A stretch of 64,000 bases of DNA from Zygnema circumcarinatum SAG 698-1b (taxonomy: Eukaryota > Plantae > Zygnematophyceae): the NCBI GenBank assembly GCA_037447605.1, contig CM074817.1:2232001-2296000 (forward strand), read 5' to 3'. The position numbers and the translations under genes were made by a program. Below are positions 19,990-60,144 of this stretch, one piece after another. How positions within the stretch are numbered: position 1 is the first letter of the stretch; the number at the start of each line of letters is the position of its first letter. Under the pieces are notes generated by a model. The model ran no database searches and was not told where the DNA came from. It saw nothing but the letters and a program-made list of their open reading frames with translations.

Positions 19990-20253
19990 GAAACCCTCAA
20001 CTAGACCCCAAAACCCTAAACCCTTCACCTTCATCCTAACTTCTAACCCCTGATCCGTAAAGCATTCACCCTAAACCTAAGCTGTAAACCCTGAACCCTA
20101 ACCCTGAAAGTATAAATCCTAAACCGTAACCGCTAGACCCTGACCCTTGATCCAGAATTTGTAGCCCCTGAACCCTTCACTCCCCTAACCCCTGAATCCT
20201 AAACCGTAACATCTAAACTCTAAACTCTGAACCCTACAACTGAACCCTAAACT
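19990..20253. repeat. Degenerate telomere-like (AAACCCT/GAACCCT)n tract directly 3' of the MFS2 stop codon
   Basis: Repeated AAACCCTA, GAACCCT and AACCCTG variants. Similar tracts occur at about 8720-8815, 22380-22530, 23040-23220, 23730-23890, 25590-26135, 45240-45270, 46575-46670 and 51070-51280. Confidence 0.8.
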
Positions 20254-23200
20254 CTACCTCGGCGAGTCCTCTCCCTCCCCCTTCCTTCCCTGCTTGCTGT
20301 ACAGCCGCTCATAGAGACCCCTCGTTCTCCAAGAGAGTGCCAATGTAGCGAAAACGCTCACCCCACACATGACAGCCATAATAAGGAAAGTTAACCTAAA
20401 GCATTTAGCTCCATAGCACGTCCTCCCTCCCTGAGGGAGAGACATCGGAAGACCCGTGGGAGAAGCAGCAGCTCCCTCTCCCACCACTCCCTCCATCTCT
20501 CCCTCCACCTGCATGTCGTACAGATAGCCCGCTATATTGTTGAATATGCACGATCCGAGGGGGTTGGCAATGGTGAAGCAGTTGTATATCATTCCGAAGT
20601 GGGTGAGTCCGAAAAGTTCGGAGAGGGAGGCGGTGAACATGCTGAAGATGACGCCATAGGAGAGGCCGATGATGAGAGAGCCGCCGTACATGGAGCCGGG
20701 CAGAGCAAAGGCGAAACAAAGGTGGCCCACAACCATGAGGCCCTGCGCCCACGCGATGAGGAGGGGACGGGGCTGCTGCCGGTGCCTGCAGGAGGGAGGG
20801 AGGGAGGGAGGGAGAGAGGGAGGGAGGGAGGGGAAGTGGGGAGGTGAGACGGGCAGAGGGGGGAGGAGTGGGGGAGAAGAGGGGGAGAAGAGGGGGCGAA
20901 GGGGGGGAGGGGGAGAGGAGGGGGGGGGGTGTGTGGGGGAAAGCGATGGAGGGGGGTGGGATGAGAGTGGGAGGGAGAGGGAGACGGGGGGTGAAAGTGG
21001 GGGGTGAGAGAGTGAGGGGGGAAGGGGAAGGGCGAGAAAGAGGGGGAGAGGGAGGGAGACAAAGAGACGGAAAGAATTGGTGGGAGGGAGAGAGGGGCGA
21101 ATGGGAGTGGGTAAGACAGAGGGGGCGCGCAGGGAAGGAGAGAGGAAGGGGGAGAGAAAAGAGAGAAAGAAAGGAAAGAAAAGAGCGAGAGAGAGAGAGA
21201 GAAAAAACTCTGTTAAGGATTCTCATAAAAAACTGGTCCAGACTATCCAAAAAAGAGCAAAAAACTGGGGAAAAACTGAATTTCAAAACCAGTACTGCGT
21301 GATTTGAAAAGCGGAATCCGTACCGCACAAGATACTCGGAGTAGAACCCTCCCCCCACTCGCCCCAAACAGTTCCAAATGCTGACGAGAGAAACCGGAAA
21401 CTTTACGTCATCATAGCCCTGAGCTTGTCCTATCTGCGCCAAATTATTAATGGCAGTAAGGCCGGTCCCCGCACCACATAACATCGCAAAAAAAGCCAAC
21501 CAAAAATTAATCGATTGTAGGGCTTCAAAAAGAGTAAAACCCTCGGTTGTAGGGTTTTTCAAACTACTCGAAATTTTCAATTTGAGTCGAGATTTTTCTT
21601 GGATTTCTTCGTCTTTTCCTCCGTGGTCTGTCCATTCAACAGACGAAGTGTGTTTTTTGATTTCGACCAATGGGGTCGAGTCGTCGTATACCCCATTTTC
21701 TGAATCGGACAAATTTTCGGGTTCCAAGTCATCAAATATTGGAGTTTCAACGTGTCTTTTCTTCATTTCTGCTTTTCTGTCTCTCTCCTCCTCCCTCTCC
21801 CTCTCCCTCTCCCTCTCCCCTCCCTCTCCCTCCCTTTCCAGAAGCTCCCTCTGCTCCCACCTTTCTTCGTCCGACCCTCCGTTTCCATGTGCAGTTCCGG
21901 TCCAAATCCGTATCGGAATTACGGATAGTAATGACAATATGAATACAATTCCGAAAACCACGAGTAGGCTTGTAGATTTCTGAACGGGGGTAATTGCTCC
22001 GATAATTGTATTTACAAGCAAAAAGCCGACGAGGACCAAAAGAACCATAAAAAAAAAATGGAAATTTTGTTTTTCCTCTTCGTCCATTCGTGCAGTACGC
22101 GGCCCCGGAGCTGTAAGAGGCAACATAGAACAGGCTCCATTCAGTTGGGAGGGGGAGGGAGGGAGAGACGAGGGAGAGGGAAGAGAGAGGGAGGGAGGGA
22201 GGGGGGAAGAGAGGAGGGTAAGGGGAGCGAGGGGAGGGTAGGGGCTAGGAAGAGGGGACGAGGAAGGGGGGGANNNNNNNNNNGGGAGAAGGGGTGAGAG
22301 AGGGTTGTGGGGGAGAAGGGGAGGAGATGGAGGAGAGGTGTGAGAGAGGGTGTAGGGTTAGAGGTGTAAGATGTGGGGCTTAGGGTTTAAGATTTTCTAG
22401 AAAATCTAGGTTTTAGGGTTTAAGGTGTAAGGTTTAAGGTTTAGGATTCGTGTTTAAAGTGGGAGCTTAAGATTTATTGGTTAAAGGTATAGGGTTTAAT
22501 GTTTAGGGTTCAGGGTTTGGTTTAGGGTGCTGCAGGTTGAGTTGGGGAGATAACAGTTTTGGAAGTTTGGAATCTGCCATAGGGGTATGAGGGCTAAATA
22601 GGGTACGCAAATTTAAGGTTTTTTTTATTTTCCCCCCCTCCCTTTTTTTTTCAAGCGCACTCACCTCCCAGAGAGGAGGCTGCAAAAAGAACTGCTTGGA
22701 GACAATGAGCCAGAGAGAGCCGTAGCCAATGAGATGCTGCCACGTGTCCACCACACAAACAGAAAATTCGAAATTGAGTTCGTGTCTTGAAACTGAAGTC
22801 TCTCACTCACTCATGCTCTCGCTTTCCCTTTTTTTTTTGTCTTTGTATTGTAAAATTTCGGAAGTAATTTGGTTTCACGGTTTTAACGTTTTACGGCGTT
22901 TCTTTCAATCTGCAGGTTTCAATATAGTGCGGATTCATGAATTAAGGGTATTAAGCTTGAGGTTGTCTCACGAGTTGAAGGATTTAGAGAATTGGGGTTG
23001 GATTTGCCAGCAAGGTTTTAGCTTATTATGCCTTTTCCACTTTAGGGCCCAAGGGTTCAACATTCAGGGTTAAGAGTTCAATATTAAGGAATCAAGATTC
23101 AGATTTAGATCAGAATTTAGCCTTCAGCCTTCAGCGATGAGCCTTCAGGCTTCAGAGTTGAGGGTTGCGAGTCGAGTGAGGCCCGGGGGTTCAGGGTTCA

Positions 23201-24219
23201 GGCTTCAGAATTTAGGGTTCAGCGCTGAGCGCGGAGGGTTGAGGGTTCGAACCTGCGCCGCCCCAATGGCGAGCGAGGCGGAGGGCGGGAGGAGGGGGAA
23301 GAGCGCGCCCGCGAGGAGGCCCGCGTTGGTGCCCACGTCCTTCGCGGAACTCACGGCCGCCATCTCGCGCTGCCCGTACCCCAACTGCGCCTGCAGGCAC
23401 GGACGCTCCATGGACCGCAGTTCTACGGACTGTTCAACGGACCGTTCGAAGGATCGTTCAACGGACTGTTCAACGGACTGTTGAACGGATCGTTCGACGG
23501 ACTGTTCAATTGATCGTTCAAACGGATCGTTCAACGGACTGTTTGACAGATTGTTCAATCGACTGATCAATGGACTGCTCGGCTGATGGAATGTGTGCAT
23601 CAATCGAGGTTTAATTGATGCGGTTATTTGAATTGCAAGACATTTGGACTTTGGGTTTGGAGGGTGAGATCGGCAGGGAGGAGGAGGGGCTTTGATTATC
23701 AACTCGAACCTGCAACACTCCCTGAAATTTAAACCCTGACCTTAGAAACTTGAACCCTTAATCGTAAGTCCTGAACCTAGTTCCTGGACCACGAACCCTC
23801 CCCTAAAGCCTAACCCTGAGCCCTGCATCCACATTCTTGATCCTGAAGCGTAAGCCCTGAATTCAAAAACCCTAAACCCTGAACCCTAACCAGACCTTGA
23901 TTGCGGGCGAGTAGATGGCGAAGGAATAGGAAAGCCCCGTGCTTGCCAGGAGCCACATTGCAGCCGCCATGGCCAGCCACCTCCCGCTCTCTTGAGAGGA
24001 GGAAGAGTGGGAGGGTCGCAGAAGGGAGGAGAGAGATCCAGAGAGGAGGGAGGGGAAAGAGGGAATTGAGGGGAGGGAGGCGAGGGAGGAGAAGGAAGGT
24101 AGAGAGAAGAGGCCATGGCGGCGGGCGCGCTTGCCCAGAGGTACAGCTAGGGCTTCCTTCCTCTTGAATATACGGGAGACGAAAGAGAGGATGGAGGGAG
24201 GGAGGGGGATCGCAGCCAT
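20254..24219 (-). CDS. Nodulin-like / NFD4-like MFS transporter, copy 2; one internal exon missing from the assembly
   Basis: Exons 24219-23896, 23390-23253, 22736-22665, [exon 4 not found; N-gap at 22274-22283], 22110-21324, 20785-20254. Intron positions and phases match copy 1, and exon 2 is 138 nt in both. Confidence 0.88.
23426..23570. repeat. 12-bp minisatellite (CGGACTGTTCAA / CGGATCGTTCAA), about 12 units, in MFS2 intron 1
   Basis: Units can be read at 23426, 23438, 23450, 23462, 23474, 23486, 23498, 23510, 23523, 23535, 23547 and 23559. Confidence 0.9.
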
Positions 24220-39741: not shown

Positions 39742-42700
39742 ATGCCTCCTGCGAGGGAGTGGATGTGGGGAAAGGAAGCAGCAGCAGGAGGGGCTTCGAG
39801 TTCCGATGAGGACGACGAAAGAGCGAGTCTTGGCAGCGGAGAGAGTCGGGCCAGCCGAACCAGCAGCAGCAGCAGCTGGAGCTCCTCTGAATCTGCATCA
39901 GCATATGGCAACCGCGATGTAAATGTCATCCTTCGCTTCTGCATTCGCACTTTGCTGGCAATCTCATTAGTATAGAGAAGACAGTACGGATTTCCGGAAA
40001 CCGCCGGTGGATGAAAAGGCAGGATGTGTGCATGGATTTGGAAGGAGATGTCAGTTTCTGCAGTAGAAGTATCGGTAGCAGTGATGATTTACAATCCCAA
40101 GGAGTTGGATGGACTGTTCTTCTTCTTTTTTGCGTCGAATAGCTTGATCCAGTGCAATATGACCTAGCGGAACCTGTATGAACCTTGGACCTGAAAATAC
40201 GACAGGTCTATGGCTGCTGCTGCTCCAGTACAGGAACTCTTGCTTTGGGTATATTCTGAAGTATTGAGGCCCTGCTGGTCGCTGATCGATTTTCAGAAAC
40301 ATTTGTCGCTTGAAATGAATCGTAAATATGGCTCCTTCAGTTTCTCCAGGTCATGCAGTCAGAAAGAATCGAGTATACTCCTTTGGTTGTAGTCAGAATG
40401 CGACGTGGCTGAGGCATTGCATTGTCAATGGAGAGGTGCAGTTATGGCTGTTACAAGATAACAGCCAGATAGGTTGTCCTTTGACTTTCTGAATGATGAG
40501 TAGTTTCGTTCATTTTGAATGCAAATGATCGGATAACTGCGCTGTTCACATCTGACTCGTTTTGAAGGCATGGGATATGGAGCAGGTTGAAGTCGTGCAG
40601 ACATCATTTGGACCCGCAACAGTGACTGTATGCGGCAACCGCAGTAAAGCGAGCCTTATCACATACCACGACGTAGCACTAAACCGTAGGCTACTCTCTG
40701 CTCTCCTTATCTCATACGCTCCAGAATTCCCTGGGCATGCTTAATATTTCGTTACTGCATACATCTGCAACTTTGAGCATCGTTCGATTGTTCTTTTAGT
40801 CCAAGGCAGGGAAAACTGAGTCGACTTTAGCTTCATATCTCGATATTGAGTCGTCGAAATCGCAATGCTGTTTTCTTGCAGATGCCACATGCTTCCAAGG
40901 TCTCTTCGAGTGCGCAGAGCCTTCGTCCGTTCTGATGAGTAATTTCTGTGTCTACCACATAGATGCTCCAGGCCATGAGGTTCGTTTTTTTCCCGCGATG
41001 ACTTGGTATTACTGTTTCTATGAAGTGGAAATCTGCTTCAAAGTAGCAAGGGCGATCTGCTTAAGAGCATCCACTTCTCTGCAGAACATTGCAGTTGCTG
41101 TACAAAAGACGGCCTTTGCATCGGGGAAGGTGCCATTTCCATTTTAAGAAGCATCATGTCTTACTAGAAGCATCTTCTGTGGTCTTTCTGCTTCAGGCAA
41201 ATGCAGCAGAGATTTCTTTAGGGGAGCCAGAGCTGTCGATGGCGGATCTATCGGAGCAAGTGGCGGAGGTTATTCAACATTTCGGGTAAGGCCCTCAGCA
41301 TGTGCATGGCTGCTGCTGGTTATTGATGATGCAGAATCTTGTGAATCCATGTTTTTATCAGGCTACGCCTCTGTAGCGGTAGCAGCCATCTTAAGGTGAG
41401 AGGGGCGGAGGGTTGCAGCTTGAAGCAGGTGGTGTGTATGGGAGTAACCGCCGGCGCATATGTTCTTACTCAACTGGCGGTAAGCGATGCAGCACAAACC
41501 CTAATTTGACGCAGGACTGATCAGGAAAAGTCTGGAGGTTTGAACGGCTAGGGCTGAAATTAGGGTTGTTGTCGTAGGACAGTGGCTGGTCAGCTTCTTC
41601 CAGCTATCCATGTCAGCGAGAGCGTTGAACTCAACGCTCCGTGGAACTGTGGTTCGCATGGAAAGGCAGTTTACTCCACTGGCGCGCATCCCTTTTTCCC
41701 GCTGACCGCCGCTTTTTCGAAAATGCGCGGTTGCGCTGGTACTTGTCAGGCCGCGCATCCGACCGTCCGTGACACGTGTCACACCGCAGGATTGCGCCAC
41801 GTGTTGCCAGTGTAGTTTATTAACTGGCTCCCCAACGTCTGACAACTGTCCAGTGATTCCGTACGGCGGTCAGGACGGGACAGTGGGTCAAGGCGAGTCA
41901 AAGGCCGTCCTTTTGTCCAGGGGCTTCCCGGACACTCGGAGCCACGTTTCCCTCTAGGAGAGGCCTCCGTCGTCTGCGCCGACAAATTTTGCAGCTGGAT
42001 GTGCGGTGGTCTGTCGGCCGCCGACATTTTTCATTAATGCTGGCTGTGTCATTCTGGACTGCCGTACGATCTTTAGTACGGTATTTCAGTTTGACCGTAC
42101 GGACTTTTCACGAATTTTCGGGATGGCGATTGGACAGTTAGCTTTGGCGTCCAATACGGACGCTGCCGACCGACGACACTTTTCACGGTTTCCATGTGCA
42201 AGTGGAGCCGTTGCTATCTGTACCGACTGACAGTTTTTGTACTTCGTACGGTTTCCATGTGCAAATGGCGACGTAAAGTTCTGTTTGGACGTACGGTTTC
42301 TGGACTGTTCTTTAATGCGGATCTTTGAAAGAGAGAGATCCAATCAATGCGTGCCGTATTGCCACGTTTCGGAATCTCTTTGACTGCGTAAAGGCTCTGG
42401 CTGGCAGTTTTGTACGGACAATCATTCCGTACAAGACGGGAAACCGTACGACCAGTTTCGTACTGCGCGCCGAGCTCCGTGGGGAGGGGGTGATCCGGTG
42501 CACGTGTTGCCGTGCTGTGTCACGCAACGGTGAACTGTGTCACGCAACGGTGAACTGTGTCACGCAACTGTGAACTGAGACCATGCGCTCTATCCAAGCA
42601 GGACTCCTGGAAGAAGCGAACTTGGTTTCTGCATTGAAATGGGACACACTATGAAAGTCTCCATTCCCAAAAAACAGTTTCTGAATCTTGTTCATCCCCG

Positions 42701-44819
42701 GGATGTAGATGCAGCCGCCACTAGGGACTTGAACTTAGCTGAGGAATTTGCCTGGAAAAGTATGTGTTTTCACATGAAGCCTTGTCCTTGGAACTGATCC
42801 CCTCTTATATGTATGTATGTATGTATGTGTCTATGTGGCGCAGATTAACCACCCCTCATTGGTGGAGGGGCTCATCCTCATATCGCCGGTCGTACAAGCT
42901 GCCTCCTGGTCAGAATGGGCGCTCAGCAAGGTCAGTACTTTGGGAAATGTTCAACATTTCCACTGTCTGTCTAAGCAGCAAATTAGGTTAAACTTGCACT
43001 TGTTTCGACTTGACAGTGCACTACTGCATTGCAGACCTGTTGCTTTCTTGACCTTTCTTGCCTCCAAACGAAGACAAATCTGCTTTCAGTCACAACTTGC
43101 CTGCTTCATTTCACATCGTAAACTGTTAGTTACAACAAAACGCAGTTCTGCATGGAACGCCGCTCCAGTTCCGGCGATCAGCATGACTTGCTGATAACTG
43201 CAATTGTTTGCATATACATACAGTTTGCAAAACTGTAGTTCTTTTTGCCCTGTTCCGTTCCACTACTGCTCCTTAACGGGTAACGGAGAGCTGCCCTTTC
43301 CATGCAGTTGACAATCAACATGCTCTGCTTTTACGGAATGACGAGTTCCATCAAAGAGGGGCTGCTCGCTCGCTTCTTCTCCACCGGCCAGCACGGCTAC
43401 CAGGGCCCGGGTTCAGACTCTCTTCTTACCTTTTTCAAGGTAATTAGACCATTTATATCGATTCACTTATTTAAACCTAATTTCTTAAACAGAAACATAC
43501 ATAACATGTGTTAGAGACGCAGTTCATATTCTGAAGGAAAAGAAGAAGGGAGGGGCTCTCCTGTTCAGTAAGAATCTGTCTTCTATTTGGCTAGATTCTG
43601 CTTTTTAGTCACATTCTACTTTGGTCAACTGCTAGGTTGCCTTCTGGGCAACTGTGGTCAAAGGGCTGTTCTGTGACCTCAACATATCGAAACAGCAAAT
43701 ACATATGCTATTTTATAGATGGAACATTTTCCCTTATTTGTGGGCCCTCTGACTGACTGGGAACTCCAATTCTTTTTCAGGAGTTGGAGACTCGTGAGCC
43801 GTGGAATATCGCGAGATACATGCAGGCTTATCTTGGGTGGGTGCTACCTACTGTTTGTCTTCTAAGAGCTCACGAATTCCGGTTATTTCTCTTGTTTCTC
43901 TTGTTTCTATGTTTCCAGAGCATTGGTGTGAGTTTTTGGGACTCCCTTTTTTTGAGAATGCCTGCCTCGAAGGTGTTGGAATGTTGGGCTTTTAGTGTTT
44001 TTAGGGTTTTTAGGGTTTGGGGACAGAATTTGGATGATAATGAGTGGCTTGCTTTTTGTGGGAGGGGAATTGCAGTCGAGCTGATCTTTCGGAGAAGCTG
44101 CAAGATGTGAAGTGTCCGACTCTCATTGTGGCCGGAGAACATTCTCCGTTTCGTGAAGCGAGTTTGGAAATGTATGCACGGATGGACCCCTCCATCACCA
44201 CTTGGATTCAGGTTCGTTCCATGCTCCTGTTCCGTCCCGTTCAGTTACGTTCCCTACTCCGGTATGCCGTTCCGTGGCGCAGGGAACTGTTCAACAGGGA
44301 ACGCTCACATGGAACTGTTGGAAAATCTGTTTCCTCCGTTTCACTTCCCTTCCATTCCGTCCTCCTCTCCTTCTTCATTACCTCTTCCTCCATTCCTCCA
44401 TCTCAGACTAACTTTTCTCTCCTATTCGTGCTAAGACAAGAGCGACTAAAACACGAACTCTGCCATTATCCTAACGCCAACCCAATTGAAACATTACGCT
44501 AATGAATAAGCCACTTAGCAAGAATTATTGCGACTTATTCGCAAGCACTTTGGCCTTTGTTTTGAACGTGCAGGTGGATGCCTCAAGTTCTCTGATAACG
44601 GAGGAGCGACCCCACATGCTTCAAACTCCCATAATGAACTTCCTCTGCAAGTTGGGATACTTTCGGAGGCCCCGCTCCTGCTTGGACCTTCACTCCCACC
44701 TCACTCTCTCTCCGTCCCCATCCTTTTCTGCAGAAGACTTCTCTCCTAAGGCTTGTGGGGTAAACTTGAAGCCTATCCGAACTCGCGTGCGTAAGATGGG
44801 AGAGGACATGTTTGAGTGA
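39742..44819 (+). CDS. NDL: NDL / NDRG-family alpha/beta-hydrolase-fold protein with a Ser/acidic N-terminal extension
   Basis: Exons 39742-39918, 40568 (or 40586)-40685, 40882-40979, 41197-41285, 41419-41479, 42844-42930, 43308-43439, 43781-43836, 44076-44211, 44574-44819. Motifs [46 protein letters not shown]...ASWSEW, TEERPH, LKPIRTR. Confidence 0.92.
42515..42577. repeat. 20-bp tandem repeat x3 (CTGTGTCACGCAACGGTGAA) in an NDL intron
   Basis: Units at 42515, 42535 and 42555 (the last has one substitution). Confidence 0.9.
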
Positions 44820-45673
44820 GAGGTGGAGGAGAGAGGAGGGGGTGGGGAGGAGGGGGGGGGAGGGGGGGGGAAGGGAGAGGTCGAGCATTGAATTGGGTGC
44901 GGGGGGGAGAGAGAGAGTGAGAGAGAGGCTCGAAAGTGAGTTGGTTGGCTTGAACGAGGTGGAACAGTTTGAGAGTTTCACCTGACGCTGTGTGAAGGGG
45001 TTGGAAATAAAAAGCGTGAAATTAGTTCGTTGATTTATTCGGAGGGATGAATAAGAGAAACTGTCATCGTAATAAAGAGCCGATCTTCGTCGCCGAACTG
45101 AAGTTGATGTAAGGACGCTTTGGTGGAGATGATGTCGCAGACTGCTATGGCATGATGGCACACATGCCATGCCATGCCATACCCATGGCATGATGCCATA
45201 GCATGCATGGCATGGTAGCAGGAATTGATAGTGGCCAGGATTTAGGGTTAGGGTTAGAGTTAGGGTTCAGGGTCAGTGGACTTCAGAGTCCCTTTTTTTC
45301 TTTTTCACGCAATAAGTGTAGCTCCAGAATTGTGATCGGTCTGCAATACGTAGAATCCGCTTCGATTTTCAGGGGGTCCTAGGGAGTGCAGACAGTGCAA
45401 TAAAGGAAGAGTGGAATAAAGAGCTGACTCAATAAAGCCTGGAGCTATGTACTCCCTTTGCTTTGCTTTTTATGACTTGCTCGAGGTTTATGCTGAACCC
45501 GTCTTTTGGGATTCTTCCTTGGAGTGAGTGGTTGGGTGATTCTTCATGGGTATTGTCATGTTCTTTAATCAAAGGCATTTGTTGAGGATACTGGGTCCAG
45601 TAGGGGGCTTTCAGACTTGAGAAATTCAATATGGAATATGTTCAAAGCCTCCAGAGGGATACCCTACTACCAA

Positions 45674-45791
45674 AAGGTTTGAACTTTGAACAATTAAAGA
45701 TTGTGGCTGTTCAAATAAAAGAACTATTCAGAATTCGGTCCATTTGAACTTTAAAAAATTCCAAAAAGAAAAGGTTCAGAGTTCAAACCTT
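45674..45791. repeat. 118-bp segment bounded by 18-bp inverted repeats (possible small MITE)
   Basis: AAGGTTTGAACTTTGAAC (45674-91) matches the reverse complement of GTTCAGAGTTCAAACCTT (45774-91) at 17/18. No clear TSD. Confidence 0.55.
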
Positions 45792-45939
45792 ATTGGTGGT
45801 AGGGGGAGGAAAAATTATTGAATCAGTACTGCTTCAGAATGAGAATTTCGCCCAGGAAGGTACGGATTCTGATTCAAATTTTCACTCGACAGGTACTGTA
45901 GAGAAATGGTTTCCCCTACCGTACCGTAAATCTCGCAAC

Positions 45940-46262
45940 GCGCTATTCAACGGTCAGAAGTCCATTACAGCACAGGTGGCGTATCCAACGGTACAGGTTT
46001 CTTTAAATCTCTCAAGTGGCTATCCAACGGACAGAAATTTTCCGGTGTGTGTACGTGGCATATCCAACGGTTTGCATTGACTCAGTCTTGCATGAGGCTA
46101 TCCAACGGTTTATAATTCACTACGTATGTGCGCGTATCACATCCAGCGGTCCGTGATCCATGACGTATGTGCGCGTACCATATCCAATCCCTATGGATGT
46201 GCGTATAGACAATTCAACGGGCCGCCATCCACATTGTATGTGCGCATTACATATCCAACGGT
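45940..46262 (+). repeat. Regularly interspaced motif array: 9 units with a TATCCAACGG core, period about 38-41 bp, non-identical spacers
   Basis: CAACGG-equivalent positions at 45948, 45986, 46025, 46065, 46103, 46144, 46185, 46215 and 46256. Confidence 0.85.
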
Positions 46263-46675
46263 CATTTTCTTCAATTGCGCCCATGCCCACGTGGCACACG
46301 CGCCAGTTTTTTACGGAAAACCGGACGCACGGATTGTGGTCGGTTTTGGCCCCCTCTCGCCCTCTTTGGACCTGAACTCTCCGAACCCCAAAGCCCCCGC
46401 TGCAGGTATTGCATGCAAAACTCGGCAAACTCTAACCCTAATCTGGTAAACTTTTTCAACTTTTGAATCCTGAGCGTTAGGGCCCGAACACCCGCAGAAC
46501 TGAACTGTGATTTCAGACCTTGTACTCGCTGGTCACAAATCGCAAACAAAAAACCGCAAACCACAATCTACAAATCACAAACCTTAAACCCGAAACCCTA
46601 AACCTTAAACCCTAAATCCTGAACCCTAAACTCTAAACCCCAAACCCTACACCCTGAACGCTGAACCCTGGGAGG

Positions 46676-49301
46676 ATGGCGGCGCGGCTGAAGGAGGACT
46701 CGTGGGACGACTCGGCTCTCATTCAGGCCTTCGATTCGGCGCTCAAGAAGTATCAGGTTTGAATTTTTTTATTTTCTTAAAAAGGATGTTTTTATTCCCG
46801 GTATATTGGTTCTTATTTAAGCTTTAACGGAAGTGACATCTAGTTCGCTCCGTTAACTTTTGGTGAAACATTAGGGTGTTCAAATCGCCAGTTCAAGTTT
46901 TTGTTTTACTTTTTTGCTGCTGTTATCTTTCGCTGGAAAATCTTCCTGCTCTGTTTCCTTTTTTAATTTAGCTTATTCCCCTCTCTCGTTTTTTCCACTC
47001 TCTCTCTCTTTCTCTCCTCAACCTTTCTCTCGCTCTCTCCCACTCCACTCTTCTCTCTCTTTCTCTCTCTCTCTCTCTCCCACTCCTCTCTTCTCTCTCT
47101 CTCTTTTTCTCTCCCACTCCTCTCTCCTCTCTCTCTCTCTCTCCCACTGCTCTCTTCTCTCTCTCCCTCTTTCTTCCTTTTTTATGTATTTCGTTTGTCA
47201 GGTTGTGACTGTTGTTTTTCAGCCTGCATCGTTGCATGCATTACATACGATGATGTTCATCTTGATGTTGGCGTTGTGATCATGCAGACGATGCATCGCA
47301 GCGATCCCAAAGGGAAAGATGATCAAATGGCGGAGGAAGAGGAGGGCGGGCAATCGATGGAAGGGTGAGAGAGATATAACCAAAGCATAAAGCACGAGTT
47401 TGAAGGCTTCTGGAGGTCAAATCGTTTTTGGGGGTTTTGTTTTATGCATGTACGCGCGTGATATATAACCAAATGAACCAAATGTTTGCAGTTTTTTTTT
47501 CCTTTCCTTTTCGTTATTTCAATTGTAGAGAATCACCATGATCTTGCCATGATATGGAGAAACGACATCATAATGAGTCTCTCTGGGGAATTTATGGCAT
47601 TGATTTTACGACGGCGATGATGCCATCAAACGTACATGGACAAAATCAGCATGGGGAACCACGAGGAACTGGGCGCAATGGACCTAAGGACAAAAGAAAA
47701 AAGTAGTAGCTGAAACCTACGCATAGGTTCAACAGCGCAGCCCTAGAAGCAGCCACGAAGGTTTAATAGTCTCTCTGTTTAATGGTTTGACATGAATGTT
47801 TGAATTATAACATGGATGTGTTTGTATTGTACGGATAGGCAGGGGTCCTCTGCACGTTTTTTGTTACATAGTTCTGGGGCAAAAACATTGATGTTATATT
47901 TGGGGTTTTGACGAGTGTCAGGGCTCAGGGTCATAAAGACCCTCATTGGAGCCGAATTTTAGTTCAAATTAAGTTCGAATGACTGACAAGTCGATGAATC
48001 TTTTTGCAATGTGGTGATAAACCTCAATTCTCTAAAGTTCATCTCCCTCTTTTCTTTGCAGTGATTTTTTAAATGTTCCAAGAAGTCCTGCCGATGATGT
48101 AAAGGCAGGTGATGTTGATGAAGATGATGTTGAAGACACGGCTGCATCACCTCCGCCTTCTCGACATAAGGAGAAGAGAGCAACGTTCATGGAATCCGTT
48201 TTTGTGAAGGCTCCGGGTACTCAAGGAGGTCTTAAAGCATCTCAAAGTCAAAATAATCCCCCCATGTTACCTTCTGCATCTTCTGCTTTTGGAGCACAAC
48301 CTTTACAGCAAGAGCAGCCATGGATTTTCCCTCAGCATGGAACAGGCTCCTGGCACCCTCCGTATCCGTACTACGGCTCCAACTATAACTGGTACGGCGG
48401 TGCACATGGAACCGCCACGGCACCGTCATTCCCAACAGCAGGCCAACAGCCGCAGCAGGGAGCATATACATCTGCCGGCGAAAACCCAAACCCTAATGTT
48501 GCCGCTACTGCAGAGATCGGCTCATTTCAACCAGTCCCTAATTCCAACTCTTACCCTAACCCTAACACTAACCCTAACACTCACCCTAACACTAACCCTG
48601 ACTTCACCTCAGCCTCTGCATGGCCTTATACTGGCACAGAATGGCCGGCAGAAGGTGCTCAAGGACAGACTATGGCTCCCCCTTCAGCAGGAAACTCACA
48701 ATGGCCGTTCCATGGCTCCCGTCACGAACCACAGTTAACTGGAGCATGTTGCGGACCCCTTTACAGTTGGACACATGGCTGCCCCCATCACTCTCCTCCT
48801 CATCCTCCCCCTCCTCACCTTTCCTATCCCCATCCACATCATCATACCCATCCCCCTTATCCCCATCCCCATGCCCCTCCCCCTACCCATCCCCATAGCC
48901 ATGGCTACCCCTGTACCCTCCCATCCTTCCCAAACTATGTTCCATATCCATCTTGCTATACTCCGAGCCCTTGGCATCTACCCCCTTGCGGCAGCATGGG
49001 TCGGCTATATGCATGTCCGGGCAGTTACGGTTTTCCATACCCTGCTTGTGCGCTCCATGCGCATCATTGCGTTCCGTTTTACTGCACGCACATGTGTCCG
49101 TCCCATGTGCCTCCCTGTGGTGGCTGCGGCCATTCAGGACAGAATCCCTCCCAAGAAGGGGCGTGGGTGGGAGGGTCGAGGAATGAGGAGGCGAGGAGGG
49201 CTCCCATAGAGGCGGTAGTGGGAGAGGATGCGGAGGGGGGAGCAGGAGGGGGAGCAGGAGGGGGAGCGGGAGAGGGAGAGGGAGAGAGAGGGAGAGGGTA
49301 G
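46676..49301 (+). CDS. SMN: SMN-like protein: N-terminal Gemin2-binding motif followed by a long low-complexity Pro/His/Cys-rich region
   Basis: Exon 46676-46756 encodes DSWDDSALIQAFDSALKKYQ (SMN motif WDDxALIxAxDxA). Exons 47288-47364 and 48062-49301 continue in frame into ORF 48189..49301. No Tudor domain or YG box was recognised, so the symbol is provisional. Confidence 0.68.
47596..47703 (+). repeat. Dispersed repeat, copy 4, in SMN-like intron 2
   Basis: GGCATTGAT...GCCATCAAACGTACATGGACAAAATCAGCATGGGGAACCACGAGGAACTGGGCGCAATGGACCTAAGGACAAAAGAAAAAAG. Confidence 0.85.

Positions 49302-53817: not shown

Positions 53818-60144
<6,327 letters not shown>

Follow-up and report, generated by a model that had tools for sequence, protein, structure and literature searches.

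The window, which is the whole stretch of 64 kb of DNA that was analysed, contains an array of short, regularly spaced repeats in the ~1.9-kb intergenic gap between the 3' end of an NDL (Ndr-family) gene and the 5' end of an SMN-like gene (Table 1). Relative to the SMN-like ATG at 46676, the array occupies the interval 414-750 bp upstream; a preliminary description of the DNA had placed it at ~415 bp, and the measured distance is 414 bp. The exons of the NDL and SMN-like genes were searched one by one. SMN-like exon 1, which is 27 codons long, matches Pfam PF20636 (E = 1.9e-8; 34.1 bits, cut-off 22.2) and the Gemin2-binding helix of human SMN in the solved structure 2LEH_B (E = 0.003). No Tudor exon was seen in the gene, which spans 46676-49301 on the plus strand. 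Exon 3 (from 48062) is long and rich in P, H, N and C; it gave no Pfam match, no word-search match and no ESM Atlas neighbour, and only two marginal, unrelated matches among 1.84 billion representatives. On these predicted exons, the downstream gene is a candidate for a Tudor-less, fission-yeast-like SMN in a streptophyte alga. Whether plants have an SMN orthologue was called uncertain in a 2026 paper (PMC13596061), and the gene bears on this open question for the plant lineage. A neighbouring cis-prenyltransferase (CPT) gene finds its best matches in a Logan contig (65%) and Mesotaenium (52%), followed by ferns, gymnosperms and Klebsormidium.

Table 1. The repeat array and its flanking features, in coordinates of the window.
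Feature	Coordinates	Strand	Description	Pfam
NDL gene, last coding exon	44574..44819	+	upstream gene, Ndr family	
Whole array	45927..46309	+	decayed ~40-bp minisatellite; 9 clear units and 1 degenerate (probable) unit	
Left half, units 1-5	45927..46108	+	two alternating unit types; flanks strongly diverged	
Core 1	45944..45953	+	TATTCAACGG; one change (C>T)	
Core 2	45982..45991	+	TATCCAACGG; GTGGCG directly before	
Core 3	46021..46030	+	TATCCAACGG; GTGGC directly before	
Core 4	46061..46070	+	TATCCAACGG; after ACGTGGCA (G-box/ABRE-like half site)	
Core 5	46099..46108	+	TATCCAACGG; GAGGC directly before	
Right half, units 6-9	46109..46262	+	GTATGTGCGCGTA...core type; 71-bp higher-order period	
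Core 6	46140..46149	+	CATCCAGCGG; AACGG lost	
Core 7	46181..46190	+	TATCCAATCC; shortened by ~11-nt deletion	
Core 8	46211..46220	+	AATTCAACGG; one change	
Core 9	46252..46261	+	TATCCAACGG; TCCAACGGTCA at 46254	
Unit 10, degenerate (probable)	46287..46309	+	CCACGTGGC (perfect G-box), then decayed core	
Telomere-like run	46579..46669	+	(AAACCCT)13, telo-box run; ends 6 nt before the SMN-like ATG	
SMN-like gene, exon 1	46676..46756	+	downstream gene; Gemin2-binding helix (candidate)	PF20636

Several other repeats and motifs lie in the window. A TTAGGG/TTAGAG run occupies 45229-45273 in the NDL 3' region in inverted orientation, and together with the (AAACCCT)13 run it provides arms that are 86-100% complementary and lie ~1.3 kb apart on the two sides of the array. 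Telomere-like sequence is frequent in the window, with further runs at 20012, 25948 and 48536. The NDL 3' region further contains nested palindromes on ATGGCATGATGCCAT with a 19-bp period (45143-45220). An 18-nt inverted repeat at 45662-45804, which is 94% complementary around an 82-nt loop, resembles a MITE or a miRNA hairpin, and an Rfam search with it returned only sub-threshold matches to miRNA families. The surrounding segment, 45600-45926, differs from the array in being AT-richer and poor in CpG (observed/expected 0.5). Downstream, the segment 52900-53200 is promoter-like, with several CCAAT boxes, two or three CACGTG/CCACGTC boxes and one GTCCAACGG. A 50-N assembly gap at ~22270-22290 sits beside GA-rich low-complexity sequence and just upstream of an ORF at 20405-22126.

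Two further tandem repeats contain AACGG. The first, GTTCAACGGACT x13 at 23420-23577, is a 12-bp tandem repeat with a 36-bp higher-order unit; degenerate telomere-like AACCCTR repeats (23715-23890) lie within 150 bp of it. It is probably located in the first intron of a minus-strand Nodulin-like/NFD4 gene, the first exon of which is at ~23872-24219. The second, a 20-bp repeat of CTGTGTCACGCAACGGTGAA x3.2 with 97% matches and an AACGG core, is located in an NDL intron at 42515-42577.

The array consists of nine motif copies at intervals of 38, 39, 40, 38, 41, 41, 30 and 41 bp, a series that was read from the sequence in the preliminary description and was borne out by a motif search. Exact copies of ATCCAACGG begin at 45983, 46022, 46062, 46100 and 46253 and copies with one mismatch begin in register at 45945, 46141 and 46212, all on the plus strand, and the deletion variant TATCCAATCC in unit 7 completes the nine-unit series. 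Elsewhere in the 64 kb, neither strand has an exact ATCCAACGG. The nine cores are all TATCCAACGG-like and share one orientation, that of the downstream gene. Three other details of the earlier reading hold in the sequence: units 2-5 have the form G(T/A)GGC(N)TATCCAACGG, the spacers after units 1-4 are 22, 24, 24 and 23 nt long, and units 6-9 change to a GTATGTGCGCGTA-type form. The AACGG core is present seven times in 350 bp against 0.55 occurrences expected (Poisson P = 1.8e-6 per 350-bp window).

The spacers had been described as largely unrelated, which was not borne out. A seed-and-extend repeat search found units 1, 3 and 5 to be alike at a spacing of 77-78 bp (82% and 64% over 33 nt) and units 2, 4 and 6 to be alike at a spacing of 79 bp, and the block of units 6 and 7 is 70% identical to the block of units 8 and 9 over 71 nt. 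When the inter-core segments were aligned globally and compared with shuffles, several pairs reached z = 4.5-7.5, with a mean of ~2 at lags 1 and 2, and an alignment of the units retains leftover similarity along the entire unit. Since alternate spacers are related, the 22-24-nt 'spacers' are the diverged remainder of a ~40-bp unit and not independent sequences. The array is a decayed minisatellite of ~40-bp units: it is composed of head-to-tail units of common descent, with periods of 38-41, 71 and 77-79 bp. The divergence among the units is too great for Tandem Repeats Finder (TRF), which did not report the array even at a score of 30. A deletion of ~11 nt, which also removed the end of the core, accounts for the shortness of unit 7. 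A tenth, degenerate unit, which resembles unit 4 over 46289-46309 (71%), probably extends the array to ~46309.

The presence of ACGTGGCA in unit 4 and CCACGTGGC in unit 10 suggests that the ancestral unit probably carried a G-box-like sequence beside TATCCAACGG. The ancestor would have been a ~40-bp unit of roughly the form GTATGTGC-ACGTGGC-(N)-TATCCAACGG-T followed by ~15 nt. This unit was duplicated head to tail, and later rounds of duplication involved dimers of ~79 bp and one of 71 bp. The copies have since drifted near to randomness, sparing the 10-nt core TATCCAACGG and, in units 2-5, the G(T/A)GGC block.

The core is a sequence match to two known proliferation-linked promoter motifs, the MSA element and the histone nonamer. 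Three-repeat Myb (MYB3R) factors target the MSA consensus, (T/C)C(T/C)AACGG(T/C)(T/C)A, and G2/M-specific transcription both requires this element and can be conferred by it alone (PMC5405339). MSA sites are present in several copies near the transcription start, in variable number and orientation, and AtSCL28, for example, has three forward copies at -34, -73 and -101 (PMC10905365). In the array, YCYAACGG is matched exactly by five units, units 1 and 8 carry TTCAACGG, and across both strands of the 64 kb only TCCAACGGTCA in unit 9 fits all 11 nt of the MSA consensus. In the promoters of replication-dependent histone genes of plants, the nonamer CATCCAACG acts positively and is linked to proliferation (PMC3603003), and the array core contains the nonamer as (C)ATCCAACG. 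The block conserved in units 2-5 is 15-16 nt long, includes GTGGC and exceeds one MSA site, suggesting that a different or a further factor may take part.

Conservation is unevenly distributed along the unit. In a MAFFT alignment of the units, mean pairwise identity is 0.83 in the ten core columns and ~0.40 elsewhere. Column permutation gave p = 1e-4 for a contrast of this size in any 10-column window, and the contrast was reached in none of 12,000 uniform-rate neutral simulations on a neighbour-joining tree of the units (3000 at each of four rate scales). This alignment was anchored on the core, which lowers the apparent identity of the flanks, and the contrast was therefore retested on ungapped lag-2 alignments that had been found independently; the retest is free of core anchoring but small. 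In the left half of the array (units 1-5), 1 of 20 core columns is variable, compared to 24 of 42 flank columns (Fisher p = 6.5e-5). The core of the left units is thus conserved in excess of its flanks, the constraint being read from nine paralogous units of a single array. In the right half (units 6-9), mismatches affect 3 of 17 core and 18 of 54 flank positions (p = 0.36), and no excess core conservation was found. Changed core positions number 1 of 50 on the left against 7 of 40 on the right (p = 0.02), with the core intact in units 2-5 and 9 and altered by one change in units 1 and 8. Uniform decay across the unit, the outcome named in the preliminary description as telling against a preserved core, was not found in units 1-5 but was found in units 6-9.

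A comparison within the window is provided by the GTTCAACGGACT repeat at 23420-23577, which decays uniformly: identity is 0.67 in its AACGG columns and 0.77 in the others, and AACGG is kept in only 6 of its 13 units. The cores of the array occupy all three reading frames, which argues that the repeat is not coding. The CpG observed/expected ratio is 1.2-1.27 in the array and 1.81 in the control repeat, and because it is also high in this neutral control it does not discriminate between readings.

These comparisons bear most directly on the possibility that the array is a neutral minisatellite with no regulatory role, in which the core was kept by chance or by a mechanism intrinsic to the repeat and the MSA match is coincidental. 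A recombination- or slippage-prone 'core' has been proposed for Jeffreys-type minisatellites. The window is rich in tandem repeats (130 TRF rows), and both of the other AACGG-bearing repeats are in introns, suggesting that such repeats also arise with no sign of constraint. The uniform decay of the right half of the array is as expected of a neutral repeat, and most metagenome arrays of ATCCAACGG, among the matches listed, are plain tandem repeats. However, the contrast in the left half was never reached in the 12,000 neutral simulations and persisted in the ungapped alignments, the control repeat in the same window lacks a core contrast, and unequal crossing-over or conversion homogenises whole units and not a 10-nt block. 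A neutral minisatellite is rather unlikely, although it is the likeliest of the alternatives.

The array is more readily interpreted as a cluster of predicted Myb-type sites that arose by tandem duplication and that would tie transcription of the SMN-like gene to proliferation or the cell cycle; the probability of this reading is put at roughly 0.55. A short, co-oriented, non-coding motif upstream of a gene would most simply be kept through binding of a sequence-specific protein. Five to seven usable predicted Myb-type sites would couple SMN-like transcription to cell proliferation or the cell cycle, and their number would give additive strength and redundancy. The core is lost or weakened in units 6-8, which are nearest the gene, and redundancy of the copies would explain the decay of these promoter-proximal units. 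The preliminary description had ranked first an old minisatellite that preserved nothing but a Myb/MSA-type site. This fits units 1-5, where the core is far better conserved than the flanks and matches the MSA consensus, and does not extend to units 6-9. The same description had called the enhancer 'phased', which the core positions do not support: their resultant length is 0.19 for a 10.5-bp helix and 0.35 for a 10.17-bp helix. The cores do not lie on one face of the DNA, nor are they spaced in helical multiples, and the ~40-bp spacing is explained by inheritance from the ancestral repeat unit with no requirement for helical phase.

To our knowledge, SMN is not a mitotic gene, and we know of no SMN or snRNP-assembly gene that is a MYB3R target. 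If the cores are real Myb sites, the array records how a promoter gained a multi-site enhancer by tandem duplication and kept only the sites, and it would place the MSA/nonamer motif at work in a streptophyte alga beyond the classical mitotic gene set.

Analogous arrangements were sought in metagenome contigs, where at least 120 loci have three copies of ATCCAACGG at distances of 12-42 nt. Plain tandem repeats make up most of the matches listed, often with a period that is a multiple of 3, and a few loci resemble eukaryotic promoters with diverged spacers. One of these loci (L037:4468-4660, plus strand), on a 46-kb contig of 35% GC, has periods of 40, 40, 56 and 51 bp followed by CCACGTG. At two others (L096 and L075), a TATA-like box is preceded by ATCCAACGG and CAYAACGG, which alternate every ~20 bp, and a further locus (L017) has a hexamer and nonamer composite, CCACGTCA+ATCCAACGG, three times. 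None of the metagenome loci among the matches listed is orthologous to the array locus by blastn or tblastn, and the ORFs adjoining the L037 and L075 arrays gave no Pfam match. It may tentatively be suggested that 'binding-site minisatellites' are a general promoter architecture in this alga, in which ATCCAACGG arrays of varied unit length arise by local duplication at many unrelated genes and the motif alone is selected while the spacers drift. Should this be true, the proliferation-linked regulon would extend far beyond the mitotic MSA regulon of land plants.

A transposon could also have placed the sites, either as subterminal transposase-binding repeats of the Ac/Ds kind or as a site-carrying mobile element that seeds arrays near genes. 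The Ac transposase recognizes the hexamer AAACGG, and Ac/Ds elements carry subterminal AAACGG repeats. CAACGG in the array is similar to this hexamer, and the MITE-like hairpin at 45662-45804 lies ~120 bp upstream. However, the array is not flanked by terminal inverted repeats and has no partner array in opposite orientation in the window, where two near-matches on the minus strand, at 55269 and 55341, stand alone. The 64 kb contains no second copy of the array, and Ac-type termini occur at chance level only. A transposon origin is thus unlikely, and the transposon subterminal or iteron-like sites put forward at the outset gain no support from the window.

A cluster of sites for a factor other than MYB3R is quite unlikely. 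The candidates would be a TATCCA-binding single-repeat Myb, a nonamer-binding factor, or a module of G-box (ACGTGGC) and Myb site bound by a bZIP/bHLH-Myb pair. The conserved block does start with TATCCA and reach G(T/A)GGC in units 2-5, units 4 and 10 bear ACGTGGC or CCACGTGGC, and the composite at metagenome locus L017 joins CCACGTCA to ATCCAACGG. For the G-box, however, the ACGT core is kept in 2 of 10 units, whereas AACGG is kept in seven.

A CRISPR-like repeat-spacer template for 22-24-nt small RNAs, also suggested at the outset, is very improbable: the likeness is one of superficial layout, with short repeats and 22-24-nt intervening segments, and is contradicted by the mutual homology of alternate spacers, a conserved repeat that is just 10-16 nt long and degenerate, an array RNA that folds no more stably than shuffles (z = +1.27), the lack of an Rfam family in the array, spacer searches that gave only chance 11-15-mers in the window and no exact match in IMG/VR (2.9 million viral contigs), and a eukaryotic host genome. 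A scan for bacterial-type promoters and terminators was empty and is of no relevance.

As a cluster of predicted Myb-type sites, the array is closest in motif to MSA promoters such as those of CYCB1, KNOLLE, NACK1 and SCL28, with which it shares the YCYAACGG(YYA) core and several copies upstream of the gene. In MSA promoters the sites act additively (PMC5405339, PMC10905365). These promoters have ~2-5 sites at irregular spacing and in mixed orientation and drive mitotic genes, whereas the array has 9-10 co-oriented units at a regular ~40 bp with a tandem-repeat ancestry, and the gene downstream of it is SMN-like. The histone nonamer (NON) is found once or twice beside a hexamer, an octamer or CCGTC, whereas the array has no octamer and its gene is not a histone gene. 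In Brassica, MITEs with E2F sites are mobile elements that carry the sites of a cell-cycle factor (PMC5950925), and through them copies of that factor's motif have come to lie beside many genes in a single genome. Unlike these elements, the array has no TIR, no TSD and no second copy in the window, and its amplification was local and in tandem.

CRISPR arrays share with the array a conserved short sequence that alternates with variable segments of similar length. They have near-identical repeats of at least 21 nt and unrelated spacers, whereas the array has a degenerate block of 10-16 nt and spacers that are homologous at lag 2; unlike CRISPR, it is also accompanied by no cas genes or predicted RNA structure and lies in a eukaryotic genome. 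In its manner of origin the array resembles promoter clusters in which sites have been multiplied by tandem duplication and in which copy number can tune output. Such clusters are known from yeast promoters and from the promoter VNTRs of human INS and MAOA. The repeats in these promoters are usually young and nearly identical, whereas the units of the array have diverged almost wholly except for the site, suggesting constraint on the site.
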